This document shows, in pieces, positions 2,070 to 62,516 of a DNA stretch of 64,000 bases. Where the stretch lies: positions 21,762,001 to 21,826,000 of the forward strand of contig NC_043005.1 of assembly GCF_006345805.1 (NCBI RefSeq), written 5' to 3'. Made by a program: the position numbers and the translations under genes. The notes below the pieces were generated by a model that searched no databases, was not told where the DNA came from, and saw nothing but the letters and a program-made list of their open reading frames with translations. The stretch's first letter is position 1; each line of letters begins with the position of its first letter. Source of the stretch: Octopus sinensis. Its lineage: Eukaryota.

Positions 2070-2240
2070 TTATTACAAAAGTTAACTGCGGACCTCCAAA
2101 AGACATTGTTGGTACAAAGAAATCCTACACTAACACCACCTATAAATCTGAAGTGACCTACACATGTCCAGGAGGACAACAGTTGAAGTCAAAATGTAAA
2201 AATGACAATAAATGGACTCCAGTTGCATCCAGTTGCAAAG
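2070..2240 (+). CDS. Exon S1, Sushi/CCP domain
   Basis: cacttccag|...AAAG|gtaatg; 171 nt; [57 protein letters not shown]. Has the CCP pattern C-x2-P...Y...V-x-Y-x-C...C...W...C. Not in the ORF track. Confidence 0.88.
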
Positions 2241-5200: not shown

Positions 5201-8200
5201 TAGAAATTATTGATGTTGTTTTTGTTGTTTCTCTCAATCTTACTTTAATTCCAGTTTCTAAGATTAATTTTGTGAAAGTAGAAGGTACAATTCTTGATGT
5301 ATCTGGAAAAACATTATGGAGTAAGAAAAATGTAACTGCAGATGATTGTGCAGAAAAATGTTTGTCTAATGAAAACTGTTTATCATTTGAAATAACAAAA
5401 AAAAGTAGAAAATGTTACTTATCAAAGAAAACTGCAGCTTCCACCAAGAACATAAAAGCAGCCAAAAGCAAAGATTACTACCAACGAATAAATCGTAATT
5501 ATTCTTTGTTTCTATTTTCCAGTTTTTCTGAAATTTGTGATTACATTTCTATGTCATAATACAGCCTTTTCCAATAAAATATCCACTTATATATACTTCA
5601 TAACATATATATATAGAATTGTTTCTCTAAAGACATTGACAATTCTAACTATAACCACAGACATAAACATGTTCCTGAAAAAAGCAATTTTATGAACTGG
5701 AAATATTGTTAGGGCATTCTTGAGAGGAAATCAGCTACTTTGCCTTCATGAGGCCCAATGTTCAAAGGTTGATTCTTTACGTGCCACTAGCTCAGGTGCA
5801 CTTGGCTTGTCAGGTTCTCTCAAACACAGCACATTGCCAAAGGTCTTAGTCATCAGTCATTGCCTCTGTGAGGCTCAAAGTTCGATGATCAGCACTTCTT
5901 TACACAGCTGTCCTCGTCCATACACATCACATGATCATACTAGTGCAGTCATCTCTCTTGCACACATAACTGTGTCTCGCTATTACTATTTCTTGCAACT
6001 ATCTTTGGAAATCTACCATGCAAATCCTTCTCTTGCTAGTCAGATAATCTTACTACTTTTTCCTGGTTTTTAGCTTCATTTGGTTTTTTGGTTTCCGAAG
6101 CTCCCACTGTGACTCTAACAGCTCTTAATAAACTTTCTTCTCTATTACTTATGTCGGAGCTCTATCTACTCTAGCTAACTCCATGCAGTCCTCCACTGAT
6201 ATTAAACCCCTTCTCCCTTTCACCTTCCTTTCTAGATAAGTATAATGTTGCTATTCCTGCTCCTGGGTAATGTCCTCCATTCATATTGAATTCCTCTCTA
6301 GTTCTTCTGTCTAGATTTGCTAATTCAAACTTTGTCCAATCTACAAAATCTGCTGAATATCTAAGTAACTATACTGCCCAAGTATTTACAGCCTTCACTA
6401 GATTTAGGCCATTTAGTTTTGACTTCATTAACTTTGTCACCTTTCTGATGTATTCCTTCTCAATTTTCATTTTCATTTCTATAGTTAGTTCTCTGTCAGA
6501 TTCTAATACTCCTAGGTACTTGTAACTCTCTCCTTTTTTCAACGAATTTAATATCTGGCCATTTGATGATAGGATGCCTTCACTGCTGACTACCTGTTTA
6601 TTTTTTATGACTGATATTGTGCACTTATCTATGCCAAATACCATACCTATATGTTTGCTGAAGAGTCTTACAGTTCGTATTAAGGAATCTATTTCTATTT
6701 TTACTAAAAAGCTTCAGTTCATCCATGTAGAGAAAATAGTTAATTTTTCCTTTACTGTCTCTAAACTGATTCCTTGCCTTTGCCTTCCTTAATACTAAAC
6801 TGAGGGTGATTAAACATGACACAAATATTAAAGGGATTAATGAGTCTCCTTGGAAAATTCCTCTCTTACAATTAACTTTCCTTAAGGCTGTGTCCTCTGA
6901 GTAGACAACTACTTTCCATTTTTTATGCTATGCTAATTAGCTCTCACTTATGTTGTTTGCAATACTGAATATGCTCAAATATTCACTCATCCATGAGTGT
7001 GGAATTACATCATAGGCTTTGTTATGATATAGCCATGCTATTGATAACTTTTTCTTTTTAGATTTCACTTCTTTTAGAACTGTTTCAGCTGTGTATAGTA
7101 GATCATAGGATCCTCTAGCTTTCTTCCTGCAACATTTCTGTTCCCTTGGCAGTAAATTCTGGCTGTCAAGCTGCTCATAAATCCTTTCTGAAGGCATTCC
7201 TGTGAACAGCTTCTGCTTTAATGGTAAGCAAGGGATTGATCTATAATTACTAGCTATATTGCCTTTGCTTTTGCCTTGAAGTACTTTACTCTCATCCAGT
7301 CTGGTATTACTCCTCCATTCAGGCAATCCTGAAGTTGTTTCCTCAGTCTGTTATGTAAGCTACTAAATTTCTTTAATCAGTTCCCTGAACTAAATCTGGT
7401 CTTGGTCCCTTCCAATTTAGCATTCTTCCTAACACTTTACTCATTAATGCACTAGTTAGTCTTAGATCTGGTTGCTTCAAACTAACTACTTCTTCCCTTG
7501 CTTTTTTTAACCATGCTGGAATTATCAGTATGCTGGACAAAATGCTCAGTGACATTTCATCTATCTGAGTTCAAATTCTGCTGAGGCTGATTTTACTGTT
7601 CATCCTTTTGGGGTAGATGAAATAAGTATCAGTTCAGTGCTGTAATCAATGTAAATGAACTATGACACACTCACACCAAAATTTCAGGTCTTGTGCCTTT
7701 ACTATAAAGAATTATTATTATTACTATTACTATTATGTACTATGTTTAAACATTAGTTAATTATATAGAAATACTATGTAATCAGAATTTTAAATAAAAC
7801 ATTACAAAGCCATCATCATCGTGATCACTTAATGTCTGTTGTTCGTGTTGGCATAGGTTGAACAGTTTGACTCCAGTCTGATTTGGCATAGTTTCTGTGG
7901 CTGGATGCCTTTCCTAATGCTGTCCACTCATTCACTATATTTGTTATACAGACAATTTATTATCAAAAGCACAGTCCATTCACAAAAATATTTTTCAAGT
8001 TGTACATGAATAATATGTACAACTTAAACAATGTAGTGAGCTTTCAAGTATGTCCCATGATATAATAGAATTCATATGAATTTTGAGATGAGTAATTATG
8101 CAGAAATATATTTTTGTGGATGGACTGTGCCTTTGATAAATTGTCTGTATAATATGATGTCCATCTATCTTCTGCTGGTGTACTTTTCTTTAAGATTAAA

Positions 8201-8887
8201 TGGCAACACTTGACACATTGGTTGGCAGTCTATTGAACAGCATTTAGACCCTACAAAAGCACCCCATTAGAATAGGAATATACAAATGGATTATATGCAA
8301 CTTAAAGATTGAAAGAAGATTTCAAATGAGTCTTAAGATTTTCTACACTTACATGAATTCTGAGTTGTCATTTTGTGGATCAATTATTTGTTTATAATAC
8401 ATTATCCACTTAAAACAAATTATGCACCAGATGTTGTTGAATATTTTATTTTTATTTGAGTATAAAATGCATTTCTTGTTTTCTTTTTTCTCTTTTTCCA
8501 GCTGAAGATGTTCATTTTACACTTAAAAGAACTGTCTTACCACATCAAAGTACATTTGAACGGATAAAAGATTCGAGTTTAAAGCAGTGCAATCATGCTT
8601 GTCTTCAAACCCCAGGATGTACCTCTTATGAGTATAATGAAAAAAAAAACTTCTGTGATCGAAGTAACATAACTCACTTGACTCATGACCTTAGACCCGA
8701 CAAAGGTGGATGGGATATTTATATCATTAACCCAGGTCAGTAGATGTTTTTTCATTTCATTTATTGTGTATCGATATGCATGTATGTGCATGTTCTTATG
8801 TATTCACATGTACATACGTGTGTGTGTACTATATATATATATACACACATACATATAGGTATATATGTCTATATATATATCTCTGTT

Positions 8888-8924
<37 letters not shown>

Positions 8925-9266
8925 CATTCAGTAGTTCATATATATAGTGTGTATGTAATTGTGTGTGTAAATGTGTATGAATCATTCAGTAGTACATATA
9001 TCCAAAATAAAGGCACACTCTAAAAATTAGAGTTGTAATATTTAGAAGATAGTTTGTTATGGTTGGTCAGAGAATGACAATTGGTTTTGCCCCTATAAAG
9101 TGCTTAGCTGTATATGCAACTTGTCAGACACAAATAGCCTGAAGCACATAACCTCTCTACATCTCGAGGGAGGAAAAAAATCATGCTCATTTGATTTATA
9201 AACAAAAAGATTCTGGAATGAAGCTCTACTGGCAAAACCTTGCACAGCATACCACAAGGTTTTTAC

Positions 9267-9297
<31 letters not shown>

Positions 9298-12023
9298 AGG
9301 CACATTGAAATGTAGGTCTAACAAGATTGTAGAGATGCTTGAACGGAGGTGTGTTGATGTATGTTGCATCCAATAGGTAAGGTGGAGAGGAGCTTCAGCC
9401 AGGTTCCTCACAGGTAAGACACATAGGTATAAAATCTTCTGGTAAGGTAACGGTGATGGAGTAGGTGGTGTGGGCATACTTCTTGCAGAGAAATGGGTGG
9501 ATGAGGTCATAGAGATAGTCAAAGTGTGCGATAGAGTGCTTAAGCTCAGGCTAGTCTTGCAGAATAGTATAGCTACAATTATATCTACCTATGACTCACA
9601 AGCCAGCCAACCAAATGAACAGAAGTACTACTTTTATGATATTCTTTTGCAGGCTACCTCAAAGTCGAGTGACAATGATCACATTTTTGTGGCTGGGAAT
9701 TTTGATAGGCACGTCGAACAGCAGCCTGGTATCTTCCATGGTGTTCATGGGGGACATGGAATTGGTTTCCAAAAGAAAGAGAGTACAAAGCTACTGAAGT
9801 TCTGTAATGCAAATGACCTACTGATCTGCAACACCAACTTAAGGAAGCCAACCAGCCACCTGATAACCTATCAATCAGGTGACTCTGCTAGCCAGATCGA
9901 TTTTATTCTTACCAGACAGCAGGATGCACGGTTGCTCTTAAATACAAAGACCCTCCCTACTGAAGAATGTACCTTCCAGCATAAACTAGTCATTAGCGAC
10001 TTTAGATTCCAGACCAGAAGGATGCCAAGAAGCACACCAATCTGGAAAAGAAAGATTTGGAAGCTTAAGGGCCCTTCATATACTCAGAGATTTAGGGACA
10101 TCCTAATTGAGAAATTTGATGAGAGGGAGGAGGAGCTACAAACTTGAGACACAGAGGGCAACTAGGAATTCATGCAAGACCACTTGCTGAGTGCTACAGA
10201 CCAAATCTGTGACTGGTGCAAAGTCCCTTCCAGACCTAGGGTAACATAGTAGTAGAACAATACTGTAGATAGGGCCATTAGAGCAAAGAAACAGGCCTGG
10301 AAGAGTGAGGGAAGCAGGTAACTGTATCAGATAGCCAGAAGGGAAACTAGGAGACAGGTATATCTAGCCTGGAGAGAAGCAGAAAAGAAGTTTGCCTATG
10401 TTCAGTGTCATGAGGACCAAAGAACTGAATTATTTCAGATTGCAAGACAGTATGTGAGAGAAGATTGTGATGTCATAGGAGAGAAATGTGTCTGCATGGA
10501 TGAGGGTGCACTTGCTTTTAATGATTCTGCAAAGAAAGAGGCTTTGACATTTCATTATGAAAGACTGCTGAACGTGGAAAATGAATGGGAAGAGGAGAGT
10601 TTGCCAGACTTTGACCCAGATGAGGAACCAGCTACCCAAATCAACAGAGAAAGCCTCTAGCCCATCGGGAATCATTGCTGAGATACTTGAAATATCTGGC
10701 AGTGTGGGTTATGGTCTAGTCACCCATATTGTTAATTAAGTGGTTCATGAAGGTGTCATACCCAATGACTAGTGTAGCAGCACCATAGCCAACTGCTACA
10801 AAGGTAAATGAGATGCCTTAGATAGAAATAATTACAGAGGTATCAAATTGTTGTTTCAGGGGATGAAAATTATGGAGAGAGTCGTAGCTCAACTAATTAG
10901 AGAGAGAGTTAGTCTAGATGAGATGCAGTTTGGTTTTGTGCCAGGAAGAAGCACCACTGATGCTATATTTCTGGTAAGGCAACTACAGGAGAAATACCTA
11001 ACCAAAGATAAACCTCTGTACTGGCTTTTGCTGATTTGGAGAAAGCTTTTGACAGCATTCCTCGATCCCTTATCTGATGGTCAATGCAGAAACTAAGGAT
11101 AGATGAGTGGTTGGTGAGAACTGTACAGGGACACTACCAGTAAGGTGAGGGGGAGTAACGGGTGCAGTGAAGAGTTCAGAGTACAAGGAGGGGTTCACCA
11201 AGGATCAGTACACAGCCCCCTCTTGTTCATCATAGTCCTTTAGGCAATAACAGAGTAATTCAAGACAGGCTGCCCCTGGGAACTCTTCTATACTGATGAC
11301 CTTGCTCTTATAGCTGAACTAGAGAAGTTCCAGGCATCGAAGCAAGGTCTAGAATCAAAGGACCTTAGAGTTAACCTAGCAAAAACCAAAGTTGTAGTAA
11401 GTAGGAAGGCAGATAAACCACAAATCCCTTCAGGTAGATAGGCCTGCTCAATCTGTAGAAAAGGTGTAGGTAGAAACTCCATAAGATGCACCCAGTGTAA
11501 GTTTTGGATGCAAGAAATCTTGAAATAAACTGAATAATGACATTACATGTGTGTGTGTATAATAGGTATTGGGATGCAAACACTATAAGTGCTAACACAA
11601 AACTCTCAGATCTTGAGCCACTCTGTTGCTTCTGCTAAATATATATATATTATGTGTACACAAACATACACACACATATTAGTCAGAGCATGTCTGTGTT
11701 ACTAAGAAGTTTGCAACCCAACAACATAGTTTTAGCTTTATTGTTATACTGTGCAGCATCAGTAAACAATGCCCTCCAGAGAACTTGCTACAAAGGCAAA
11801 ATCGCATATATAGAATTCACACCAAAAACACAATATTGCGACAAACACAACACCAAAGAAACATAACTTAGTTCATATTTCCATACAAATAAATGTACCT
11901 ATCCCTAAAGGGAAAATCTTTATCCTGCTTAGAAAGCACTTTCTCCCAAATTTCAAATATTATACAATCTTCACGAAAGACTTCAAAGTGAAGAAACCAC
12001 TGCTTGAGGTGTATGTATATATG

Positions 12024-12057
<34 letters not shown>

Positions 12058-12061
12058 TATA

Positions 12062-12107
<46 letters not shown>

Positions 12108-15100: not shown

Positions 15101-15604
15101 CAGGCTTCACAGACCCTAGTTGAACCGTCCAACCCATGCTAACATGGAAAACGGACGCTAAATGATGATGATGATGATGATGATGATGATATATATACAT
15201 ATACTATATATATATATCATATATCAATATCTATAAATCTGAAATGCGAAAAGTTTGTTTGTCTGATTTTGGCATTGGAACGGGTTAAAGGTCACTAGAT
15301 ACCGTTAGATTCGCTCCAAAATTGACAGGGACATATCTTAAAAGGTGTCGTTACTAGGGCAAAAAACGCACACCGCCTTCGCCAGCGCTGTCACTCTTTC
15401 TTCCACTGCCTCCCTCCCCACTTCTCTCTCTCTCTCTACGTCTGTCTGCATTCATAGAGAGTTTTATTATCGCCACCACCAACACACAATCATGAGAACA
15501 AATATTATGAATCAGATATTTATTGGGTTAATCTATATATGTGTGTGTGTGTGTGTTCTATATATAAATATGTATATATAGTGTATATATACAAAGTGTA
15601 TATA

Positions 15605-15643
<39 letters not shown>

Positions 15644-18358: not shown

Positions 18359-18417
<59 letters not shown>

Positions 18418-25001: not shown

Positions 25002-25044
<43 letters not shown>

Positions 25045-27508: not shown

Positions 27509-27575
<67 letters not shown>

Positions 27576-38035: not shown

Positions 38036-38066
<31 letters not shown>

Positions 38067-40565: not shown

Positions 40566-40631
<66 letters not shown>

Positions 40632-43600: not shown

Positions 43601-44640
43601 CTTTTTTGTACCACCTCGTGTAACTAATAGGCCATTTCAAAATTATACACTACATGCATTATAATATTTACTCTGTGTGTGTGTGTGCATGCAACTGTTT
43701 TGAGTGTGGGTATAAAATTTACTCTTTGTTTTCTTTTTTCTTTCTAGCCAAAGATAGAAAAACTGTGCTTCGTAAAGTTAGCATACTTCAGCAAGATATT
43801 TTAAAACAGCTTCAGAATGTGAACTTAAAGAAGTGTAATGAAGCTTGCCATCAACATCCAGAATGTAATGCATTTGAGTACAAGAAGAGAGAAATGGTCT
43901 GTGATTTGAGTAATGGGACTCATATGACTGATAAACTTAAACCCAATGATGGAAATGGAGATACTTATATCTTTGATAAAAGTGAGTAGAGTATTTTCAT
44001 TTTATTTTTATGTACATGCTTGTGTGTATCTTACATATTAAAATTGAAAATGTGTGTGTGTGTGTGTGTGTGTATTGGTTTGTCCTCATTTTGCACTAAA
44101 ATGGCTCGACCGATTTTGTATGTATGTGGATGTATGTGTGTATGTTTATGTATGTATAAGTATGTACGTATTTATATGTGTGTATATCTCTATATATATA
44201 TATGTTTATATATATATGTATGTATGTATATATATATATAAATTAGAAAAATATATATATATAAATTAGAAAATTTAAATTATACCATTTAGAAAAATTA
44301 CATATTATAGAAAGATTAAATATTAGATAAAACATATAACAATGATTCAGTAATGTGCAAAATAATAAATAAAACATATATATTTGGTATAAAATGTATA
44401 ATATATACATTTTATCTATTATTTTGCACATTACTTAATCATTGTTATATGTTTTATCTTATATTTAGTCTTTCTATGATATGTAATTTTTCTAAATGGT
44501 ATAATTTAATTTTTCATTATTGAATTGATAAAAGGTGGATTTTTTTCTAATTTATATATATATATATATATTATATTTTGTGAAATTTGATTTAGTATTT
44601 CTAAATTGAATTTTTCCCTGTAAATTTGGAATAATATTCC

Positions 44641-44700
<60 letters not shown>

Positions 44701-44962: not shown

Positions 44963-44995
<33 letters not shown>

Positions 44996-45365: not shown

Positions 45366-45397
<32 letters not shown>

Positions 45398-51300: not shown

Positions 51301-54300
51301 TTTCTAAATGAACTACAAGAGACTTACAACTAGTTACTTCAAGGAAAATTTCATGAAGCTTATATAATCTTTCATGTTCATGTATAGCAAAAATTCCACT
51401 TCATTGTTCTCTTTTTCTAGAGACTCCAGAAACAGAAAAACAACCAACCCAGTATAATTTCAAGCTTATACAACATACTCCGCTCCTTATGTACCAGAGG
51501 AATATAATTTCAATTTTTGTCTTTCTGGCTAAGCCATAGACAAAAAAAACACATACATGTGTATGTATACAAGTGGCAGGATTCGCTATATATAAATATA
51601 TATATTTGAGTTTGTGTGTGTGTGTGTGTGTGTAGCTATGTAGCTGTGTATGTTTCAATGCTTGGATATATTGTTCTTGAGACTTTCCAACATTGCTTCA
51701 CTCTAAATCAGACATTTTTTTTTCTTGAACTGAAAGTTTTAAATGCATATCATACTTACCTACCTGCCTGTATACATGTGAATCAACATACATATATACA
51801 GTCAGACAGACAGACACAAGTTGGTAGAAAACACTAGGCCCCTAGCTTACCCATATGTTATGTACAAGCTTTACAAAAGAATTATTTTATTTCAAATACT
51901 TCTGTTATGTTATATATTTAAAACTTTAGATAATATAAGTACCTTATAACTGAAATTTTTATTTTAAATATTTGAAAGTCATCTGGTTCATTATTTTCTA
52001 AATGGACAATTTATTATAAAAATAGAATCCATCCACAAAACTATTTTTTGACATGAGATATCCTTCTCAAAATTAGTACGAATTCTAGTACATCGTGAGA
52101 CACACATGGAACCTTGCCTCACTGTTTTAGGTTGTAGCCAGTACATTTGTACACCCTTCTTCTGATAGTGTGCTTTTGTTTAAGATTAAATTACCATAAG
52201 GATACTTCACATGCTGGTTGTCCATCTTTTGAACTATGTTTAGATTCAACAAAAGTACACCATTAGATAGGAATGCAGAAATGGATTACATGCAACTTAA
52301 ATTTTGAAACAATATTTCAAATGAGCCTGAAGATGTTTTATATTAACATGAATTCTAACTAAGTTGTCATTTTGTGGATCAATTATTTATTTATAATGCA
52401 GGCATGTCCAACTCATGCCTGCATGGAAAATAAATGTTAAATGATTATGATAATGATGATGATTATGATGACAACGACAACCATTGAAAACAAATAATCC
52501 ACCAAATGCTTTTTATATATAATATGCATGTGTAAATATAAAATGTCTTTTTTGTTTTCTTTCATTTCCTTTTTATTTAGCTGATGATGATGTTTTTACA
52601 TTAAAAAAAACTGCCATACCAGGGACTGATTCATCTGATCGGATTAAAGGAATCAGTTTAAAGGAGTGTGATCGTGCTTGTCTTCAAATTCCAGGATGTA
52701 AATCTTATGAATACCACGAAAAATATAGTTACTGTGATCCAAGTAATAAGACTCACCTGACTTATGACCTTAAACCCAACGAATATGGATGGGATATACA
52801 TATCATGAACCCAGGTCAGTGGAGTGTATTCATTTAATTTTATGTGTGTCTGCATGCATGCATGTGTCATTTCATTTGCACATATGTATTATATAAATTG
52901 GAAGACAGCACACTAGAAGTCCTCTGCAATCTATCCTTAACATTTTTTTAATAAGTCTTTTATTACCTGAATACACACCCCCTTATTCCCCATAATGACA
53001 GCAATTTTTCTCTTTTTCTCTCTTTGTTCCTTCTCTCTCTACTTTTCCTCTTACCCTTTGACCCTTAACCACACCTACTCTATCCATTATTTCAGTTCAA
53101 CCTTACACCAAAACATTCATTGATTGTTTAAACTTGCTTTCTTTGTTTTGTCTCATTTTTTTTTTGTGTGTGTGTGTTACTGATTTTTCTATTCTTTTGA
53201 AATTCCTAACAACAATTTAAACTTCAGTGAGGTAATTTCAGTCTGATGACTACATACACTCTGAAGAGCTGTGGAGAGTTCACTATGTAATACTTATGTA
53301 ATGAGCTTCAGCTATTTAAGAAACATATGTAGTTTACATGTTACTTGCTCCACTCCTTTAAATGTTGGATTAATATTCGCATTTTTAGCAGCATTAGTTG
53401 CTAGCAGTGAGTTGTATGGAAACTATCAGTGAGTTCTATGGAAACTATCAGTTTGGATTTGTGTCAAGGAGAAGCATCATCGATGCTATCTTTCTGGTGA
53501 GGCAATGGCAGGAGAAATACTTTGCCAAAAATAAATCTCTGTTTCTGGCTTTTCTTGACATGGAGAAATCTTTTGACAGGGTTCCCCACTCCCTGATCTG
53601 GTGAGCAATGCAGAAATTAAGGATAGATGAGTGGTTATTGAGAGCTGTACAAGCCATGTACAGGGATGCTGTTAGTAAGGTGGAAATGTTCAAGGAGCCT
53701 GAGATGACAGCAGTAGGGGACCAAGAGCTCAGAGCCATATAGGAGCATTGTGAGGATGACAGCCATGTAGACTCTGACTTTTGTGTTGATCTTAAGATGC
53801 TTGTTGTTCCACACTTGCTTGTGCAGTCTGCCAAATGTTTTGTTTGCCTTTGCAAGTCTGTTAATTTCTTTGTCGATACTCGCATCTGATGAAATGGTAC
53901 ATCCAAGATAAATGAACTGCTGTACTGACTTCAGTTCTGTTTCATTAATGGTGATGTGGGGCATCCTGTACTCTTCAGGAGGTGGTTGGAGTAGGACTTC
54001 AGTCTTTTTCAAGCTTAATTCCATCCCGAAGAGCTGGGCGGCCGCTGCAAAGCAGGAAGTGATGCGCTTCAGGGCTCATTCTGTGTGTGCAACAAGTGTG
54101 GCATCATCTACAAAGAGGAGGTCCTGGATCACTTGCTCTTGTGTCTTAGTATGAGCCAGTAGGTGCTGGAGGTTGAAAAGACTGCCGTCAAGACAGTACT
54201 TGATGTAGACACCGTCTTCAGCATTGAGGTCTGCAGTGGCCTGCTTGAGCATCATGCTGAAGAGAGTAGGTGCTAGGACACAGCCCTGCTTCAACAGTTG

Positions 54301-57300
54301 ATGAGGAATGGCTCTAATATGTCACTATTCAGGCGGACTTATCCTTGCTGGTCTTTGTGAAGCTGGATGATCATCAGTAGGAATTTTTGGGGACAGCCAA
54401 GTCAGTTTAGGATCTGCCACAGACCTTTCCTGCTCACAGTCAAACAGTTTTGTCAGATCCACAAATGTTACATAAAGTGGTTTATTTTGCTCCCGCCACT
54501 TTTCCTGGAACTGCCTGAGAATGAAAACCATATCTGTTGTGCTTCTGTTGGCTCTGAAACCACACTGGCTTTCTAGAAGATATTTTTCGGCAATGGACAG
54601 ACCAAGTCTGTTGAAGAGTAGACTTGCTAGAACTTTTTCTGCAGTGGAAAGCAGGATGATCCCCCAGTAGTTTGAGCAGTCTGACTTTTTCCCTTTGTTT
54701 TTATATATTGTAATGATGACAGCATTACACTATATACGTGTATACATACATGTATATTTGTATGTATGTATTTATATCTGAATGCAAATATTTTCTATCT
54801 GATTCACTTAATACTTTTTCTTGTGATATTATCATTTCTTCCTCATTCTTATTGTCCTCCTAAGATTCACATACCATTCATATCAGTTTCTTTTTCCATT
54901 TCCAGTTTACTCACTTATTAATTGTGGACCTCCAAAAGATATTGATCGTGCATCGACATTCTACAATTCCACCATTTATAGATCTGAGGTGACCTATAGA
55001 TGCCAAGATGGAGAAGAACTAAAGTCAGTGTGTACAAAGGACAATAAATGGACTCCAGTAACATCTATTTGTAAAGGTAACATTAATAGCTTCTCTTTGT
55101 TGTCTCTGTCTAAGTAATTTTGTTTACTTTTTGTAATAAATGTCTTTGTCAGAGGTTGACTCCATATTAATTTTCTAAGTGTCTGTGGTTGGTATGTGGA
55201 AAACATTTCCACAAATTATGCAATATTAATTCTACCCAAGGGCCAGGTAATGCTATGAAATTGGGTGATGTGTTAAGTCTGCCAAACAAAAGCTGGAAGT
55301 GTAGAAACTTGTCACAAACAAGCTTCCAACATAGAGTCCATCAACCAGATTTCATGCACAAAGCTTAGTTGTGAAGCAAATTCTTAACCTCAGACAAAAC
55401 TACGTTGCTGTTAGGTAAACTTCTTACCTCTATAGCTATTCCTTGATAAATCTTGATAGTTTTTTTTCTCTTAATTTCTAACTTGCCCTTTTGCACCCTT
55501 GCTTTCTATTGTCATCCCAATCATTTTACAATATAATTCCATGGGTCCTCATTTCGTAAAACTCAGCAGCCATTTAAAACGACTTCTGAGACTCTTGTTA
55601 TTTTCCAATTCATACCCTTTAATTATATTATTAATAATAATGCTTCTTGATTTATACACAAAGGTAAGTTTTGATGGGAGCTGTTTAGTCAACACCATCA
55701 GCCTTATAACTTGATGTAGACATTATGTCATTGACCTCCAACAAGTATGAAAGGCAAAGTGAACTCTGGATTCATTTGAACTGATATCCAAAAGTGCTGA
55801 AATACATAATTTAAAGCATTTCTTCCAATTCTCTTATTAGTATACATTGATAATAATGTTGAAGATGATGATGCAAAATTCTTGGGTGTAAATGGATGTC
55901 GGTCTAGGGTTAATTGAAGAACCCCCAACATTGAACATTAGGCTCATCTCTCAGGACAAATGGAGAGTGTGAGGCAATTATTGGGATGGAACTCCCAGGA
56001 TGAATAATTACTCCAATTTTTGTCACCTATACTACAGGTTTATGCACTGTGGTCCCTATCCACTCTTCCTTATCATATTTATTTATTTTACAAGTGATAC
56101 TTTAAAAATGCATATGAGTGATTAACCAAACTCTATCATTAGATCTTTTAACTTCATCCACCATACAATCATTTTGCAATAACTATTAGATAGAAAAATT
56201 GCCTTTTCTTCACTGTTAAATGAGAGGATGCAATAATTATCAATATGGACTTGGCTGACAAGTTCCCTCTCCCATACAACAGCAGCTGTTACCACAAGTC
56301 ATCAATGTATGAACAATGAATAAGTGCATGCAAAATGATTTTGTTGCACTGCACACATCTCAGACAGCCGTGTTTGTTGGTCTTTCCATCAATTATTTAT
56401 TCATTATTTAGTGACATTACCAGTCATCATTAGAGGAAGCAATGAGACTATGTGATATTCATGTCTTTCTCAAGGGCAGTAACTGACTATGTAATGTAAA
56501 CTAATTGAAACTGAGAATCAAACCCAGATCAAACACCACTCAGCCCATATTTATACTAAAAGAACAACTAGGGGATAAATACACATCGTCACTCCCTGCA
56601 TAGAAAACAAATAATAAAGTGGCTAATTATTGAAGCAGCAAGGTGCCACACATCTATCTCTATTTGTATTTATTCACTAGTTGAGATAAGAGGAAAATTA
56701 TTTTTGTTGTCTCAGGTCAAACGTCGCAAAGAATAAAGTCATTGGTTATAGTCTTTGTCATGACTAACCATATTTAGTTACATTCTGGGTTCAAATCCCA
56801 CCTGAATGAACATTAATCAAGTAGTGAGATCAATTTCTTCATATACATTCTCACCACAGACAGAGTGGCCTTGTGTTTAAGTTCAGAACTTATTCGTTAA
56901 TATCAGTGACATCAATAATAATTATAATTATTCTTGTCGTTAAAGATGATAGATTGACAGAATCATTAAAGCATCAGAGAACAAGTGCTGTGGTATTTTT
57001 TCTGGCTCTTTAATGCCTGATTTCAAATTCTACTGATGTTAAATACAATGCCAATCAAGTGTAGGCGAACAATTTAATCAACCCTCTCCTACCACAAAGA
57101 TTTAGGTTTCTTTCTATAATAGAAATTATTATTATTATTATTATATTTCATTGGTTTAAATTTTATTTTAAATTTAGATGTTAAGAACAAATTTGTGAAA
57201 GTAAATGGTGCATATCTTGATGTACCTGGGAAAAAATTGTTGAAGAAGAAAAACGTAACAACAGATGAATGTGCAGAAACATGTTTGTCTGATGAAAGTT

Positions 57301-60300
57301 GTTTATCATTTGAAATAACCAAAAGAAATGGAAAATGCTTCTTATCAAAGAAAACTTCAGATTCCATCAAGAAAATAAAAGCAGACAAAAGCAGGGATTA
57401 CTACCAACGAATTAAATGTAATTATTCTTTGCATTTTATCACTGGAATTTTCTTTTCTGTTATTTCTGAAATTTGTGATTCCATTTGTACTTCATAATAT
57501 ATAAACAACCATTTCTGTTAAGTCATTGACAAATTTACCTATAAAGACAGGCAAAGACATATTCCTGGTATAAGCATTTTTTGGAACTGTAAATATTGTT
57601 AACACATTCTCAAAAAGTTCCAGGACTACTGATGTTTAATAAAAAATAACTTATTTACCTAAGTTTTAATATCATCTCCTTTGAAATAGTCACCTTACGC
57701 AGCAGTACACCAGTTCCAGTTTTCCTGCCACTTTTGGAATCCAGCCTGGAAGTCATTTTCCACAGGCAAGATGAGCACCTTCCGTGATTTGCTCTTGATC
57801 AGTGTTAAATCGGTGACCTTTATCTAATATGCAAACTAACAGAAGTAATGCCATTTTATGTAACTGTGTAACTCCTATATTTTGTGCTAGGTTTAGTGAT
57901 CACAGTATTAGAATACTCATGAATGCTAGGATGACATTGTTAATACAATGAATTCTTCTGGATCAAAAGGAAAAGTGAGCCATTCCTCTGTATATCTACA
58001 AGAAACTTTCATCAGAATTAAATAGCAAACTTCACTGCAATATTTATCCTGGGCAGCCTCAAGAAGTGTGAGTACTTTCACAGATCAGCTTTATACAGAG
58101 ACAATAGCCTAGAAATTTCAAGTAATATACCATGAAAAGATTTAGGACAAACTAGACATGAATTTTTAATAAATTGGATTCAAACATAGTGATTGCTACC
58201 AATCTAATTACATTCAACTAAGTGGACTTTACTTTAGAAATGGTGTTGGGTATCAGCTGAGTAATACTCCAAGTGAAAGTCTAACTACTAGAACACACAC
58301 CTTTATGGGAGTTTCAATTCTTACTTCTAAGCTGTAATAAGAAAGTTAGTCACTGCAATTACTAAAATAAATTCCACTTTATCCTCAGGAATAAATATTT
58401 TTGATAGTATATTTTACAGTACAAGGTGTTAGCAAAGATTGGCTTTAGTGAGAAGTGAATATAAACAGAACAACTTCCAACTCCACACCCAAAATGAATT
58501 AGAAAGGGAAGAAGTTGATTAACTTCACCCTTCAACATAAATGTCTCCATGAGCAAAGCAAGGGAATTTTTTCTTGTATTGGACACCATTTCTCAAGCAA
58601 CACATAAGCACCACAAACATATGAGCCTGCATAGTGTTAAGGTTAGTTCCTCTTATCTGGATGACATGATACCAGCAGTGTATGTTACAATAGGAAAATT
58701 ATACACTTATCCATTGTTTACTCCAGTCACCCACCTGGAACTGCCAAACTCAATCCACCTCTGTGCAAGAAAACTAATTAATTGATTGTTTGATCAACCA
58801 TTCTGATAATCAATGAATCAGTTATGTTTGTCAAGGTCCTTTCATTGCCACTCACAATCTCTTCAGTGTCATATTCCCTCTACATTATGCTTGAGTCAGG
58901 TCTGGCAGTCTTTTAGTTTTTGGTTCAACATCAGTGTGGTTGTATTGGTGTGAGGGCAAATGTATATGAGAAAGGAAGGAACACAGAAAAATGGAGTGTG
59001 TGTGTATGTGAGAATGTACAATTATGCATGTGAGTTTTCATATGTGTGTTTGTGGTTGACTCTGTGAGTACATACATTAGAACGTGTGTGTCTACAAAGG
59101 TGTATATGTGTGTGTGGGGGGGAATGCATTCATAGCTGCACATGGTAAAATGTTTATATCATTGTATCATTTATCTTTTGGGCCTGTCTTTTTGATCGAA
59201 TGGTGGTGCATCTGTAGGCACCAGTGCATGTGATTATGTATACTGTTCTCCTCGGGCCTATCATACCCAAGAAACCCAAAAAGAGTACCTTGGGAAGCAT
59301 CTAGCACATAGCCAACTTTGTCCACCAAAGCATAAAAAACAATGATAGACTACCCTACAATGCATCCAAATAATAGACTTCTTGTCCTTCATACTGAACT
59401 TTATCTAGAAACTATACACAGCAAAGTTCAGCTCCACCATTCTTATTAAATGAAATTCATGGCCCCCCTTGGTATGTAGTTCACAAGAATCCTGCTATAT
59501 TGTACAATATTAAGATAAATATACTCATAACAGTTTTAGTCAGGCTAGTGAATAACATATCTCCCTTGAGTAAACCATATGAAGTAAAGAAACATGTACG
59601 GGGCTTCATGCATTGCATGCAATTCTCAGGCTGCTACAAAAAAGGCAGTGTCAATATGTACATGAGGGCAAAGAATAAATTAGAGGATATAAGTAAGGAA
59701 ACAAATGAGAGGCACAAGGTCTCAAATTTTGTGGGAGGAGACTAGCTAATTACAACAACCCATGTCCATAACTGGTACTTATTTCACTGAACCCAAAAGA
59801 ATGAAAGACAAAGTCAACCTTGATGGAATCAAACTCAGATGGATGAAATACTGCCAAGAACTTTGTCAAGCATGCTAATGAATTTGCCAGCTCAGTATCT
59901 TACACAACAACATTAATATTGAGACTAAAAATAAGGTAGATTAGTCTGAAGCTGACCTGCAATAGAGAAGGTTTGACATTGAGAGGTCACAAATGATGAT
60001 GAAGGGAGACTTTGACAAGCATAACTGTTTCATTGATTAACTGAGTCATGAATCAAACAATTGATCAGTTGGTTAAATATGTAACAAATTGACGAATAAC
60101 ATAGAAGTTAAATTGTAGCAGTGTGTGTTTATTTTTGGCATTATGACCCTCCAGTCAGAAAACAAAACCCTTTTCAACATACAAGTTTATGTCAAGTGTT
60201 TTACAAACCAAATACAAAAGGATTTGAGCAGAGCTGATTCCAACATTGGGACCAACTCCATGCAAGCATGAAGGAACACTGGCAAAGTGTCCTCTAAATC

Positions 60301-62516
60301 AAAACCTTACCTGTCATTACATGTCTGGTTAGTTGCTCACACTTGATCATTGTACCCCACAGGAATTTACAATTCACATTTTTGGTGACTCCTTCTGGTG
60401 TTTTCTCATACCACATCTTTGCTCTTTGTAGGCTGTGATTTCCACAAAACTCCCAATGGAGCATTCTTGCCACATTGTCATGGTGTTTTGTATTTGTGTT
60501 GTGACAATTTCAGGCATTCACCAATGATGTGCCATGCCATTTTACCCCTCTCACCACATTCTGCTTTTGCTGTTATCACTATCAGTAGTGTTGTCTATTC
60601 TGCACTTCATATAGTTGGTCCTTAACCCTTGTTCTTGAACTGCGCATATGAGTACATCTCTATCTTTAGATCACTCCTCCTCATCCATAGCCACTGGTCC
60701 TCTGTATCTATCTTGGTGTTCACATACATCTCTTGCAAAGTGACCATACAATTTCTTTTCTTTCCATGCTTTTTATTTTTTTATTTCTTGTTTAAATTTT
60801 TCTTTTCTTACTCAATTCTCTGTGTTGATGACGCCAACCTTCTTCGTGTGTTTCAACAGTGGCTCCATGACATTCTTTTATATACCACTCTAAGCTGTTT
60901 TCCTTTGCTTCGATACAATCCTGGCAACTGATCAAACTTCTTCCATTCTTTCTTCTGGACAAGTACAACATATTGGTGTCACTCTTAGGATGGCAGGCTC
61001 TATGTGCTGCCAACACTTTTCTGGTCTTGGTATCCATTTTCTTCATTTTACTCTTTTGCCATTTTATGATTCCTGCTCCATACCAAAGTGATGCTATCAC
61101 CCACATATTAACTGCTTGTCTTTTATCCCATCCAGTCAATTTTGAGTGCAACACCAATGTCAATCTTCAGAAATACTCCATCCTCAGTTGTTCTTTCGTT
61201 TCTTTTCCATTATCCCTTTGGACTCTAGTACAACAAGATATTTGTATTCTTCCATTTCGGTTTGTTTAATCAAGTCTTTATTTGGTTATTTTACCCTTGC
61301 TAGGGACTGTACCTTGCCTCTTTTTAGTTAGATTATTCCACACTTCTTGAGTCCAAATTCCATTCTAGTATCAATACTAAAACAGTGGACCATGTTCACC
61401 AAGGAACTCACTTGTGTCTCATCTTTGCCATACAGTTTCAAATCATCCATGAAGATGAGGTGGTTGATTATTTGGGATTTTTCCTTTAGTTGGTACCCCA
61501 GGTTCATTTTCCTAAGTACCAAGGTCAGGAGTAACATGCAAAGGACAAATAGCAATGGAGATAGGTTACCACCTTGGAAAATCCATCTTCTGATACTCAG
61601 GGTGCCCAAGCTTTTTCCATAAGATGTCAGTTCAGTTTTTCATCCCACCATATTTCTCTTCATGAAACATGTTACATTCCTCACAATTCCAAACAGATCT
61701 AAGCACTTGATAATCCATGAATGTGGAATCATATCAAGCTTTGCAATAGTCAATCTAAGCCATTCCCAGATTTGTTCTCCTTCATTGTTCTCTTGCATTA
61801 CCATTTTGTCTATCAATAGTTGATCTTCAGCACCTCTGCATCTCCTTCTACAGCCTTTTTGCTCTGTCAGTAATATATCGTTCTTTCTGCAGTTCCTCCT
61901 GATTGTAACTTCCACATTAATTGTAAGCAGGAAATTGGTCTGTCATTGTAAGCAGCATTTCCCTTTGATGCATCCTTCAGGCACAGCACCATTCATCCTT
62001 TTGTCAACCAGCCATGGATTTCTCCTTCTTCTTATCATTATTATTGATTTGACTCAGGCTTTGTCTTATTCTTGGCAGTATTTTTGTGGGTAATGGATAC
62101 AACCTGTAACCTTAGGTATCTACTAACTTTCAATAGTCTTTCAAGTGTGGGGAGTTTTTGATATCACCTCATATAATAGATATACTATTTTAAAAAATTA
62201 TGTGATGCATGCATCATGTGTTGAGTGTGTGTGGCGGGGTATAAAATGTACTTATTGTTTTCTCTTTTTTTTTTCCTTCCAGCTGATGATACGGAAATTA
62301 AGCTTTCTAAAGTTAGCGCACCTGGACATAATGTTTTAAAGAAACTTCAGAATGTGAACTCAAAGAAGTGTAATGAAGCTTGCCTCCAACATTCAGAATG
62401 TAATTCTTATGAGTACAATAAGAAAGAAAAGGTCTGTGATTTGAGTGATGTGACTCATTTGACTGATAAACTTAAACCCAATAATGGAAATTGGGATATT
62501 TACATCATTGATACAG
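2070..62516 (+). CDS. Multi-exon gene (partial, open at both ends) encoding a tandem Sushi/CCP + PAN/apple + PAN/apple repeat extracellular protein; 17 exons, 1232 codons in window
   Basis: 17 exons, each AG...GT bounded, phase 1-1, length divisible by 3 and stop-free. Junction codons are also stop-free. No signal-peptide or terminal exon was found between units. Confidence 0.85.
5255..5494 (+). CDS. Exon A1, PAN/apple domain (basic type A)
   Basis: aattccag|...|gtaatt; 240 nt; [80 protein letters not shown]. PAN core C-x3-C-x5-C-x-S-F...C-Y-L. Confidence 0.9.
6230..7510 (-). mobile_element. Degenerate R4/Dong-like non-LTR retrotransposon RT fragment
   Basis: Minus-strand ORFs [31 protein letters not shown]...[55 protein letters not shown]. 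Confidence 0.75.
7510..7730 (+). mobile_element. tRNA-derived SINE
   Basis: B-box-like GAGTTCAAATTC, body tttcatccttttggggt.gat.aaataagta, ATT-rich tail; many related copies in the window. Confidence 0.65.
7805..7930 (-). mobile_element. Short RTE 3' tail fragment
   Basis: Reverse complement of the 15040-15190 tail (ggatgcc.ttccta, gtccaacccatg.., (ATG)n). Confidence 0.6.
8502..8735 (+). CDS. Exon B1, PAN/apple domain (type B)
   Basis: tttttccag|...CCAG|gtcagt; 234 nt; [78 protein letters not shown]. Confidence 0.9.
9290..11500 (+). mobile_element. Degenerate RTE LINE with APE endonuclease (ORF 9470-10147) and broken RT
   Basis: [54 protein letters not shown], then [24 protein letters not shown]. 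Begins right after (GT)n and truncates near 11500. Confidence 0.88.
12175..12800 (-). mobile_element. Inverted degenerate RTE 3' fragment
   Basis: Minus [47 protein letters not shown], followed by the family 3' UTR/tail. Confidence 0.75.
12820..15190 (+). mobile_element. Young 5'-truncated RTE LINE: RT ORF 12861-14423 (520 aa) with internal PHD finger, tandem-repeat 3' UTR and (ATG)n tail
   Basis: [45 protein letters not shown] (13524-13535), FRYLG. A small frameshift near 14418 truncates the last codons ([14 protein letters not shown] continues out of frame). Tail aacggacgctaaatgatgatg. Confidence 0.95.
14630..15020 (+). repeat. GC-rich ~60-66 bp tandem repeat (~6 units, alternating variants) in RTE 3' UTR
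   Basis: Unit gtgccggtggcacgtaaaagcaccatccgttcgtggccgttgccagc followed alternately by gccgccccgactgg or ctcgcctg.cc. Confidence 0.8.
15224..18003 (+). mobile_element. Non-autonomous Helitron, copy 1
   Basis: Starts A|TCAATATCTATAAATCTG; ends with hairpin acccgtgcatagagcgggt (17972-17990) + caccttaag + CTAG. Internal ~295 bp subrepeats; no RepHel ORF. Confidence 0.8.
15750..16718 (+). mobile_element. Penelope-like non-autonomous insertion nested in Helitron copy 1, carrying a hammerhead-like motif (16586-16612)
   Basis: Present in copy 1, absent at the matching TA tract of copy 2 (~18670). Contains CTGTTGA-A-GAGC-gcag-GCTC-GAAA-CGT. Confidence 0.5.
18004..19954 (+). mobile_element. Non-autonomous Helitron, copy 2 (head-to-tail with copy 1)
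   Basis: TC start directly after the CTAG of copy 1; hairpin acccactcgtagagcgggt (19923-19941) + caccttaag + CTAG|T; collinear with copy 1. Confidence 0.8.
20217..20387 (+). CDS. Exon S2, Sushi/CCP domain
   Basis: aattccag|...AAAG|gtaaca; 171 nt; [57 protein letters not shown]. Confidence 0.9.
21000..21560 (+). repeat. Unclassified interspersed repeat-like insertion
   Basis: More GC-balanced block with no counterpart in the paralogous S-A introns (41420-42700, 55080-57170). Family not determined. Confidence 0.35.
21570..22490 (+). mobile_element. R4/Dong-like 3' fragments (REL endonuclease C-terminus, 3' UTR, (TAA)n tail)
   Basis: [11 protein letters not shown]...IDI, KY.DLK.E..R.W....K.VPVIVGAL-type remnants, ending ccaaacctgagtcaagtcaaataataataa. 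Confidence 0.6.
22750..24140 (+). mobile_element. Degenerate R4/Dong-like LINE, N-terminal/pre-RT part
   Basis: [86 protein letters not shown]. Confidence 0.75.
24705..24944 (+). CDS. Exon A2, PAN/apple domain (type A)
   Basis: aactctag|...|gtaatt; 240 nt; [80 protein letters not shown]. Confidence 0.9.
25002..25058. repeat. (AAT)n microsatellite
   Basis: Visible; similar tracts at 22435-22490 and (ATT)n at 27497-27575. Confidence 0.95.
25058..27495 (+). mobile_element. Degenerate R4/Dong-like LINE (RT, CCHC motif, REL endonuclease, 3' UTR) flanked by TAA repeats
   Basis: [96 protein letters not shown]...TIPVVIGAL. Confidence 0.85.
27580..27800 (+). mobile_element. tRNA-derived SINE
   Basis: ggcagagttgttagcac...GAGTTCAAATTC...gtaccagttgagcac...tagtagaaaggattgttact. 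Confidence 0.7.
28378..28611 (+). CDS. Exon B2, PAN/apple domain (type B)
   Basis: ttttctag|...CCAG|gtcagt; 234 nt; [78 protein letters not shown]. Confidence 0.9.
29815..30005 (+). mobile_element. tRNA-derived SINE
   Basis: ctggcagaatcgttagcgcgatggacaaaatgcttagtgg...gttctgagttca...aataagtact. Confidence 0.7.
30550..30640. repeat. 30 bp pyrimidine tandem repeat (~3 copies)
   Basis: ttctcttcctttttctcttttcctttccct repeated. Confidence 0.8.
31229..31396 (+). CDS. Exon S3, Sushi/CCP domain (one codon shorter)
   Basis: cacttccag|...AAAG|gtattg; 168 nt; [56 protein letters not shown]. Not in the ORF track. Confidence 0.88.
34244..34483 (+). CDS. Exon A3, PAN/apple domain (type A)
   Basis: aattccag|...|gtaatt; 240 nt; [80 protein letters not shown]. 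Confidence 0.9.
35000..35450 (+). mobile_element. Tx1/L1-like RT relic (plus strand)
   Basis: [21 protein letters not shown]....F...F.SWI.IMY resembles ALINLDQSKAFDRVDH.YL. Confidence 0.55.
35470..36330 (-). mobile_element. Tx1/L1-like C-terminal relic (minus strand)
   Basis: [10 protein letters not shown]...[18 protein letters not shown] and C-terminal ETVLHAFV.C zinc-knuckle remnant. Confidence 0.65.
36360..37010 (+). mobile_element. Cluster of three tandem tRNA-derived SINE copies
   Basis: Three consecutive heads with g/tTTCAAAT- or tttgaattt-type B boxes near 36410, 36615 and 36870, each followed by tttcat...aagta/gagttg bodies. Confidence 0.65.
37697..37930 (+). CDS. Exon B3, PAN/apple domain (type B)
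   Basis: ttatctag|...CCAG|gtcagt; 234 nt; [78 protein letters not shown]. Confidence 0.9.
38700..39420 (-). mobile_element. DNA transposon relic, probably CMC/Chapaev3-like transposase
   Basis: [32 protein letters not shown] and [27 protein letters not shown] on the minus strand, frameshifted. Family assignment is from memory of the motif, not from a search. Confidence 0.6.
39480..39665 (-). mobile_element. Short Helentron/HINE-like non-autonomous element
   Basis: Minus strand: acctctgccttagtgaaggtgaaggt hairpin, (GTTT)n/GTCT, then gatatctcaagaactgctggatggattcaatgaaatttgcag. Confidence 0.4.
40570..40630. repeat. (TA)n microsatellite
   Basis: Directly visible. Confidence 0.95.
41247..41417 (+). 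CDS. Exon S4, Sushi/CCP domain
   Basis: aattccag|...AAAG|gtaaca; 171 nt; [57 protein letters not shown]. Not in the ORF track. Confidence 0.88.
42707..42946 (+). CDS. Exon A4, PAN/apple domain (type A)
   Basis: atgtctag|...|gtaatt; 240 nt; [80 protein letters not shown]. Confidence 0.9.
43748..43981 (+). CDS. Exon B4, PAN/apple domain (type B)
   Basis: ctttctag|...|gtgagt; 234 nt; [78 protein letters not shown]. Confidence 0.88.
44050..45530. repeat. Compound AT-rich microsatellite field including (TA)n, (TG)n and a long (TATG)n at ~45365-45525
   Basis: Directly visible; source of many spurious ORFs. Confidence 0.95.
45790..48620 (-). mobile_element. Degenerate, interrupted RTE LINE (RT region 47850-48620, C-terminus 46200-46620, tails at ~45800 and ~46760)
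   Basis: [10 protein letters not shown]...[27 protein letters not shown] (47978-48223); [13 protein letters not shown]; (CAT)n tails. Confidence 0.75.
49304..49543 (+). CDS. Exon A5, PAN/apple domain (type A)
   Basis: aattccag|...|gtaatt; 240 nt; [80 protein letters not shown]. Confidence 0.9.
52581..52814 (+). CDS. Exon B5, PAN/apple domain (type B)
   Basis: ttatttag|...CCAG|gtcagt; 234 nt; [78 protein letters not shown]. Not in the ORF track. Confidence 0.88.
53390..53690 (+). mobile_element. RTE RT fragment
   Basis: [24 protein letters not shown]...[15 protein letters not shown]. Confidence 0.8.
53690..54715 (-). mobile_element. BovB-like RTE RT fragment (different family from the main RTE)
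   Basis: [77 protein letters not shown]...FGRL. Confidence 0.75.
54906..55076 (+). CDS. Exon S6, Sushi/CCP domain
   Basis: atttccag|...AAAG|gtaaca; 171 nt; [57 protein letters not shown]. Not in the ORF track. Confidence 0.88.
57178..57417 (+). CDS. Exon A6, PAN/apple domain (type A)
   Basis: aaatttag|...|gtaatt; 240 nt; [80 protein letters not shown]. Confidence 0.9.
57605..57830 (-). mobile_element. Mariner-like transposon 3' remnant
   Basis: Minus strand reads [11 protein letters not shown]...(frameshift)...[11 protein letters not shown], like the mariner C-terminus; TIR-like aaaaagttccaggact at ~57612. Confidence 0.55.
60270..61990 (-). mobile_element. Degenerate R4/Dong-like LINE (RT to CCHC region)
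   Basis: [74 protein letters not shown]...[20 protein letters not shown]. Confidence 0.8.
62030..62150 (-). mobile_element. R4/Dong-like 3' UTR fragment shared with 43490-43620
   Basis: Reverse complement of 22330-22435; same fragment and position upstream of B4 and B6. Confidence 0.6.
62283..62516 (+). CDS. Exon B6, PAN/apple domain (type B)
   Basis: ccttccag|...ACAG|gtcagt; 234 nt; [78 protein letters not shown]. Confidence 0.9.

Follow-up and report, generated by a model that had tools for sequence, protein, structure and literature searches.

A stretch of 64,000 nucleotides from the genome of Octopus sinensis (NC_043005.1, positions 21,762,001 to 21,826,000 of the forward strand, RefSeq assembly GCF_006345805.1; hereafter the window, whose own numbering is used throughout) holds an array of 17 one-domain exons that encode Sushi/CCP domains (S) and two types of PAN domain (A and B). 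This array is probably an internal part of a giant gene that has so far been found only in Octopus. The gene would code for a secreted, glycosylated and multivalent string of CCP-PAN-PAN units, which has grown by block duplication, ends in a GON domain and binds its ligands through the A-B pairs. The domains themselves and the logic of the exon phases are classical; what had not been described before is the repetition of the CCP-PAN-PAN order, the size of the locus and the fact that it is found only in Octopus.

A tblastn search of the window, for which a single peptide of each domain type (S, A and B) served as query, gave exactly 17 strong matches, all of them on the plus strand. Each match is enclosed by a single AG...GT pair that yields phase 1 at both ends. 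The array extends from position 2070 to 62516 on the plus strand in the order (S-A-B)x4, A-B, S-A-B, and the length of every exon is a multiple of three (Table 1). An earlier interpretation made from the letters alone (the sequence-only reading) had proposed 17 stop-free, one-domain, phase 1-1 exons in this order and a product of over 1200 amino acids. All of this was confirmed, down to the exact outer borders, and splicing of the 17 exons results in 1231 amino acids with no stop. As stop triplets account for 5.8% of intron triplets, about 71 would be expected by chance in 1231 codons (P about 1e-32). The window sequence is free of N, and all 34 splice dinucleotides and all 68 cysteines of the array are intact. 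The splice acceptors are uniformly YAG and follow a tract of 80% pyrimidine, compared with 47% upstream of background AGs, while the donors read GTAA.., GTCAGT or GTGAGT. Gene models of the related proteins described below use the same exon junctions as predicted here.

A permissive six-frame hidden Markov model (HMM) scan detected no further S, A or B exons on either strand, including the flanks at 1-2069 and 62517-64000. The fifth unit lacks its S exon; in the corresponding intron (43982-49303), a sensitive blastn search with the S exons and their flanks and the permissive HMM scan returned only low-complexity matches and no S remnant. Because all exons are of phase 1-1, the frame is kept despite this loss. 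The S-less intron contains a 576-bp TATG-type microsatellite (44947-45522) and fragments of transposable elements (TEs).

The window is an internal piece of a larger gene. The first exon starts in phase 1 and the last exon ends in phase 1, therefore neither end of the gene lies within the window, and no start, stop, signal peptide, initial or terminal exon or membrane segment was found in it. An in-frame stop is located 2-7 codons beyond each B donor (8736-8741, 28612-28619, 43982-43989 and 62517-62524, with equivalents after B3 and B5), and the corresponding read-through endings are …NPGQ* or …GQWSVFI*. Judging from these positions, retention of the intron after any B exon would terminate the protein cleanly behind a complete unit.

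Table 1. Exons of the S-A-B array and the largest intron in the window. Identities to UPI0006955489 refer to the collinear domains of this database protein.
Feature	Domain	Position	Strand	Length	Remarks
Exon S1	one Sushi/CCP domain	2070..2240	+	171 nt	phase 1-1; Sushi 24.8 bits alone, cut-off 20.7
Exon A1	PAN type A	5255..5494	+	240 nt	phase 1-1; PAN_1 E=7e-12 alone
Exon B1	PAN type B	8502..8735	+	234 nt	phase 1-1; PAN_1 E=4.5e-7 alone
Largest intron		8736..20216		11.5 kb	decayed non-LTR copies, GC-rich 61/128-nt tandem repeats, 1.3-kb duplication
Exon S2	Sushi	20217..20387	+	171 nt	phase 1-1
Exon A2	PAN-A	24705..24944	+	240 nt	phase 1-1
Exon B2	PAN-B	28378..28611	+	234 nt	phase 1-1
Exon S3	Sushi	31229..31396	+	168 nt	one-codon deletion; phase 1-1
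Exon A3	PAN-A	34244..34483	+	240 nt	nearest paralogue A5 (80% aa)
Exon B3	PAN-B	37697..37930	+	234 nt	nearest paralogue B5 (71% aa)
Exon S4	Sushi	41247..41417	+	171 nt	nearest paralogue S6
Exon A4	PAN-A	42707..42946	+	240 nt	
Exon B4	PAN-B	43748..43981	+	234 nt	donor GTGAGT
Exon A5	PAN-A	49304..49543	+	240 nt	no S exon ahead of A5
Exon B5	PAN-B	52581..52814	+	234 nt	91% identical to UPI0006955489, first domain
Exon S6	Sushi	54906..55076	+	171 nt	86% identical to UPI0006955489
Exon A6	PAN-A	57178..57417	+	240 nt	80% identical to UPI0006955489
Exon B6	PAN-B	62283..62516	+	234 nt	79% identical to UPI0006955489; ends in phase 1

Analysing the spliced product with Pfam identified 12 PAN_1 stretches (307.5 bits, E=1.2e-93) and five Sushi stretches (57.2 bits, E=2.3e-15) above the cut-offs, in agreement with the domains assigned in the sequence-only reading. 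Single exons are recognised as well, with 45.4 bits for A1 and 30.1 bits for B1 against a PAN_1 cut-off of 21.4 bits. Each S exon of the window codes for four cysteines and the CCP tryptophan, which is invariant in all five, and its Pfam match and all-β predicted fold mark it as a Sushi/CCP module. Each A and each B carries the four core PAN cysteines; together with the profile match and a predicted helix-plus-sheet fold, this places both in the PAN superfamily. They are not apple domains in the strict sense, as the third disulfide, which would link the N- and C-termini, is absent and neither the window product nor its relatives contain a trypsin-like domain. A and B share a mutual identity of only 16-32% and thus represent two old subtypes.

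The window product has an isoelectric point of 9.2, with 15% Lys, 68 Cys and 18 N-X-S/T sequons, and no membrane-spanning hydrophobic segment was found along its 1231 residues. Two sequons, NVT in A and N-x-T in B, occupy positions that are conserved family-wide. The extracellular nature of the domain types, the invariant cysteines, the conserved sequons, the lack of a membrane segment and the signal peptides of small relatives all suggest that the protein is secreted.

To obtain a structural model, we utilised AlphaFold with an alignment of eight family members and predicted P0008, a database relative from O. bimaculoides. The mean pLDDT of 68 and pTM of 0.30 are low, as expected for a flexible string. 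Within the model, the PAN domains reach pLDDT values of 75-87 and consist of one helix packed on a sheet, and the CCPs are all-β at modest pLDDT. Comparing the P0008 model with the PDB by Foldseek revealed the apple domains of factor XI and prekallikrein as the best matches (E=3e-9). Further fold matches comprised β2-glycoprotein I, the apple domains of Toxoplasma MIC4, Sarcocystis SML-2, AMA1 and the N domain of HGF. Matches in the PDB by sequence were limited to the CCPs of CR1, CR2 and DAF, and to MIC4.

Relatives were collected by a word-indexed protein search and then by an exhaustive HMMER search with P0004, an O. bimaculoides model, over 1.84 billion cluster representatives. The former returned eight relatives, all from O. 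bimaculoides or O. vulgaris and named 'uncharacterized' or 'SVEP1-like'. HMMER added models from O. sinensis and the 279-aa MetaClust protein UPI0006955489 (P0012), and looking up the clusters behind its matches led to the 4470-aa O. vulgaris model CAI9728790.1 (P0155). In total, 12 Octopus protein models contain S-A-B or S-S-A-B strings. The relatives include LOC106869390, LOC128248837-40 and LOC106869402 of O. bimaculoides as well as LOC118764741/2 and XP_036361599.1 of O. sinensis, and their unit variants comprise S-S-A-B, A-B-A-B and S-B. Their exons are likewise of one domain and phase 1-1, measure 171 nt (S), 237-243 nt (A) and 225-234 nt (B), and are separated by introns that are homologous between units.

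No exact database match to the window product was found. The closest protein is UPI0006955489 (B-S-A-B), which is collinear with B5-S6-A6-B6 of the window at 83% identity overall and has identical residues at the three exon junctions. For the remaining window exons, the best match per exon ranges from 62 to 82%, so that the window would represent another part of the array, or another Octopus-like species, than these proteins do. At the DNA level, TE copies are up to 90% (mostly 80-88%) identical between the window and the Octopus loci described below, and homologous exons and introns about 65-80%.

After the Octopus family members, the scores of the exhaustive HMMER search drop sharply. Below the drop follow generic CCP strings (CR1-like of amphioxus, and SVEP1-like), GON proteins of gastropods and cuttlefish, a protein of Argonauta hians composed of a signal peptide and A-B-A-B, and annelid proteins with multiple PAN domains. 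No repeated S-A-B order was found outside Octopus among these representatives, which are clustered at 50% identity. The sequence-only reading had known of no family with a repeated CCP-PAN-PAN architecture. The architecture is indeed confined to Octopus in the HMMER search, but fragments of it had already been annotated, and it is hence unstudied rather than unseen. In the literature library that was searched, we found no paper on these genes or on any octopus protein with PAN, Sushi or GON domains.

To place the array in its genomic context, we fetched loci from O. bimaculoides (CM046610.1, 88.25-88.83 Mb), O. vulgaris (OX597823.1, 24.01-24.19 Mb) and O. sinensis (CM016867.1, 20.76-20.81 Mb). 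On O. bimaculoides CM046610.1, the models P0003, P0007, P0002, P0008, a 4083-aa model and P0004 follow one another in the same orientation within 88.25-88.82 Mb, and the gene after P0004 is CACHD1-like. In the 220 kb fetched from this span of at least 568 kb, we counted 104 distinct exons of the S, A and B types on a single strand, with intact phase 1-1 exons between the models and upstream of the first one. On O. vulgaris OX597823.1, models of 4470, 861, 857 and 3597 aa lie in a row and 32 exons run through the model borders. The O. sinensis CM016867.1 locus shows seven exons, some of them outside the annotated model. Across these loci, 144 of 152 exon hits are flanked by AG...GT, have phase 1-1 and a length divisible by three. 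The reference annotations split one continuous same-strand array and leave intact exons between the models unannotated.

A signal peptide is absent from all 12 models, which start either at an internal methionine of a domain or in unrelated sequence. Eleven of the 12 models end by reading through into an intron. The exception is P0004, the last O. bimaculoides model, in which a B domain leads into a GON domain (E=6e-33) that is closed by a natural stop. The sequence-only reading had placed the signal-peptide and terminal exons outside the window; in O. bimaculoides the array ends with this GON domain, and a signal-peptide exon was found in no species. The array that crosses model borders, the domain-internal starts and the ends by intron read-through thus make it likely, if unproven, that annotation has broken up a single gene of about 10,000 codons. 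The extent of the array (>0.5 Mb), its single strand and the GON domain at its end would also be best explained by one gene of this size.

Alternatively, the loci could represent a tandem cluster of separate genes with a few S-A-B units each and with their own promoters and terminators. The NCBI and ENA annotations divide the loci into models of 380-4470 aa, the higher-order period of the array differs between the window and O. bimaculoides (see below), and the in-frame stops behind the B donors could close short isoforms. However, not one of the 12 models has a plausible first exon, the gaps between models are filled by intact phase 1-1 exons, and neither an initial nor a terminal exon occurs in the window. 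Moreover, the O. bimaculoides assembly is interrupted at several of these loci by runs of 881 to 6524 N, and such a gap can by itself be enough to split a model. We therefore consider a gene cluster to be unlikely, although it is the most serious competitor of a single giant gene.

The arrangement of the introns indicates how the array grew. Introns in the window measure 0.8-11.5 kb, and introns of different units are 64-70% identical over kilobases (for example, 2498-5561 versus 31489-34542), hence whole exon-intron blocks have been duplicated. Comparing B domains of the window by their distance in units revealed identities of 0.41 and 0.40 at lags 1 and 3, against 0.62 and 0.54 at lags 2 and 4; the A domains follow the same trend more weakly. 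The window array thus consists of three copies of a block of two units and six exons, from which the S of the fifth unit was lost. In two O. bimaculoides stretches (L002 and L003), by contrast, the period is four units (S-S-A-B, S-A-B, S-A-B, S-A-B) and the B peak lies at lag 4. Different source blocks have thus been amplified along the locus. A global sorting of exon subtypes into two or three clusters gave no informative grouping. Since each exon is one domain of phase 1-1, the duplication or loss of an exon never breaks the frame.

The S4 and S6 exons are 79% identical, compared with 96% over the 250 nt downstream. Positive selection that lets the exons outpace their introns was considered and dropped, since a separate, near-identical block of ~800 bp explains this contrast. 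The block follows S4 (41575-42374) and S6 (about 55240-56040) and is 94-100% identical between the two, whereas the exons and near flanks reach only 78-88% (immediate flanks 80-88% in a sliding window, much as in the exon) and the host intron is 64-66% identical to those of other units. This pattern looks like a recent gene-conversion tract that is confined to the intron. Within the block lies a near-identical 71-aa open reading frame (ORF; 41844-42059 and 55499-55714).

Selection was measured on 15 collinear reciprocal-best exons of O. bimaculoides and O. vulgaris. Pooling these orthologues resulted in a non-synonymous rate (dN) of 0.085, a synonymous rate (dS) of 0.098 and a ratio ω of 0.87 (S 0.75, A 1.08, B 0.73). 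The introns of the two species, compared over 18.7 kb, show 89.3% identity and 6.9 gap openings per kb; dS therefore matches the neutral rate. Whereas ~21 indels would be predicted for the exons from the intron rate, only two were observed, both of 3 nt. The 200 nt adjoining the exons are about 93-95% identical versus 89% in deep intron, which would be anticipated for functional splice sites.

A parsimony count of changes per site, similar to SLAC, over 58 S, 44 A and 45 B exons from three Octopus genomes gave overall ω values of 0.63 for S, 0.88 for A and 0.75 for B. The cysteines and several core residues showed no non-synonymous change in this set. One cysteine column of S is conserved at 93% owing to the deletion in S3, and the other S cysteine columns are fully conserved. 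Between paralogues within the window, pairwise ω ranges from 0.33 to 1.9. These comparisons clearly point to purifying selection on fold, frame and splicing, with most surface residues changing at a near-neutral rate. Such near-neutral change would fit either relaxed constraint, as in structural repeats, or the mixture of purifying and diversifying selection of recognition proteins.

The symmetric exons could also form a cassette pool, in which variable skipping or choice of exons generates many isoforms and a somatic diversity for recognition. This idea is compatible with a giant gene, and several observations accord with it: every exon is one domain of phase 1-1, the frame survived the natural loss of S5, the S-S-A-B, A-B-A-B and S-B variants occur among relatives, and the exon-proximal introns are more conserved than the deep introns. 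Phase 1-1 symmetry is a general rule for shuffled extracellular modules (Patthy), however, and needs no special explanation, so that we regard such cassette use as improbable. That the window copy is a decaying, non-functional duplicate array is highly improbable: near-neutral amino-acid change (ω 0.6-0.9, in paralogue pairs up to above 1), the lost S exon and the missing exact database protein would be in keeping with a pseudogene, but the complete lack of stops, the exact exon lengths maintained beside indel-rich introns, the intact cysteines and splice dinucleotides with strong polypyrimidine tracts, and the same constraint between O. bimaculoides and O. vulgaris orthologues all argue against it.

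Several observations weigh against a giant, Octopus-only gene for a secreted binding protein. The 5′ end of the array and a signal-peptide exon were not found, and further array exons occur in the flanks upstream of the loci L003 (O. bimaculoides) and L008 (O. sinensis). Neither was the 3′ end found for O. sinensis, the species of the window, and the GON end is known only from P0004 of O. bimaculoides. The annotation pipelines left the models unjoined, which would also fit several transcription units. No spliced product from read assemblies appeared in the protein searches, and the two sequences of this origin that were inspected, P0040 and P0088, are unspliced genomic ORFs. As the search library was clustered at 50% identity, other octopod genera may hide behind the Octopus representatives. 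With regard to recognition, an ω near 0.9 also fits weak constraint, and the nominally positive sites (10 of 211) are no more than expected by chance and would not survive a correction for multiple testing.

The ligands of PAN/apple domains are proteins or carbohydrates, and CCPs have roles both in spacing and in recognition. When comparing the octopus string with known systems, the best fold match of its PAN domains is to factor XI and plasma prekallikrein, in which tandem PAN/apple modules likewise serve protein-ligand binding. However, these proteins combine four six-cysteine apples, arranged in a disc, with a serine protease, whereas the octopus PANs have four cysteines and alternate with CCPs in a string.

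Tandem PAN pairs are also a feature of Toxoplasma MIC4 and Sarcocystis SML-2, both of which were found in the fold search. MIC4 (4a5v, E=5e-5) is the sole PAN match by sequence in the PDB. SML-2 is described as a lectin in its PDB entries, among which is a complex with a galactoside; MIC4 also binds galactose. By analogy, MIC4 and SML-2 may serve as a functional model for the octopus A-B pair. They differ from it in that they are small proteins without CCPs and share only 16-17% sequence identity.

The octopus S domain, a four-cysteine CCP with the conserved tryptophan, resembles the modules of CR1/CR2, DAF, β2-glycoprotein I and SVEP1, and CR2 and CR1 are the top sequence matches in the PDB (E=8e-7 to 1e-4). 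Unlike in these CCP strings, the octopus CCP stands singly or sometimes in twos and merely punctuates the PAN pairs. If a weak and spurious MBD hit is set aside, the domains detected were limited to PAN, Sushi and, in P0004, GON, with no VWA, EGF, pentraxin or HYR. The automatically assigned label 'SVEP1-like' is therefore a misnomer.

Small GON proteins of Sepia and gastropods combine PAN and/or Sushi domains with a C-terminal GON domain and are 41-45% identical to the tail of P0004, which suggests that a small ancestral gene of the PAN/Sushi-GON kind was the starting point within which the giant gene expanded. In Sepia pharaonis, GON-Sep-2 (R4FJA6) consists of a signal peptide, Sushi and GON, and CAE1175485.1 reads PAN-Sushi-Sushi-GON in an N-truncated model. 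In contrast to ADAMTS9/20 and GON-1, the octopus gene has neither a metalloprotease nor a thrombospondin repeat. Argonauta hians GAB1601772.1 (356 aa) has a clear signal peptide and recognisable A and B subtypes in the order A-B-A-B, and proteins of the annelid Dimorphilus gyrociliatus contain 17-19 PAN domains in a row. However, the proteins of Argonauta (~32% similarity) and Dimorphilus (22-24%) lack CCPs and the S-A-B periodicity. The small relatives of Argonauta and Sepia, on which no publications were found, have the appearance of ancestors of the giant Octopus gene or of parts from which it was assembled.

Taken together, the gene of which the window holds a part would encode a disulfide-rich, N-glycosylated and basic extracellular protein in which CCP(Sushi)-PAN(A)-PAN(B) units are lined up as beads on a string. 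It may have expanded from a small PAN/Sushi-GON ancestor, similar to the genes of cuttlefish and gastropods, by tandem duplication of entire exon-intron blocks, with blocks of two units and six exons in the window. By comparison with other PAN/apple proteins, the A-B pairs would be the ligand-binding modules, for glycans or proteins, and the CCPs presumably the spacers between them. The whole could then be a binder or scaffold of high valency, located in mucus, an egg coat, a secreted matrix or a humoral recognition layer; the sequence-only reading had proposed a role in immunity, mucus or gamete recognition. Selection would keep frame, cysteines, core residues and splice sites, and leave the surfaces to drift or diversify.

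A more far-reaching proposal is that one gene of >0.5 Mb encodes a secreted protein of roughly 10,000 residues and about 45-50 units, an octopus innovation that achieves recognition by fast-changing PAN surfaces. Such a protein might, with possible variable use of its symmetric exons, recognise species or pathogens, for example in the egg coat, on sperm, in mucus or in humoral immunity. We regard this as a tentative scenario and, in its full form, a doubtful one.

Cephalopod genomes are known for lineage-specific gene expansions, but to our knowledge hardly any of their large orphan loci has been studied. The locus described here is a clean case of an architecture that we found only in Octopus and that arose as blocks of three symmetric one-domain exons were duplicated again and again. 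Three reference genomes mis-annotate the array as a row of truncated genes, and these gene models can now be corrected. The array also provides a natural system for exon-block duplication, gene conversion and near-neutral surface evolution in giant extracellular proteins, and its product is a candidate for a multivalent, lectin-like protein of the mucus, the egg coat or the immune system of octopuses. If the single-gene reading is true, this protein would be among the largest known in molluscs; if it is only a structural filler, the result is a useful fix of the annotation with no conceptual advance.

Besides the exons, the introns of the window contain microsatellites, tandem repeats and remains of TEs, and no Rfam RNA families were found in the window. 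The sequence-only reading had described nearly all TE ORFs in the introns as decayed, and those that we scanned are indeed fragments of non-long-terminal-repeat (non-LTR) retrotransposons. The largest, of 520 aa at 12861-14423 (+), is a reverse transcriptase piece (RVT_1, E=2e-32) with a PHD-like finger. The same 11.5-kb intron holds an endonuclease fragment at 9470-10147 (+) and a second partial copy at 10643-11508, 80% identical to 12866-13758. Copies 81-90% identical to this non-LTR element occur in the O. vulgaris and O. sinensis loci; the TE family is therefore shared across Octopus. Further downstream, a 1.3-kb direct duplication of 90% identity (16728-18016 and 18653-19967) includes internal repeats of ~220 bp. 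GC-rich tandem repeats at 14708-15015 and 15927-16114, with units of 61/128 nt and 78 nt, raise the local GC content to a peak of 0.47 amid AT-rich DNA.

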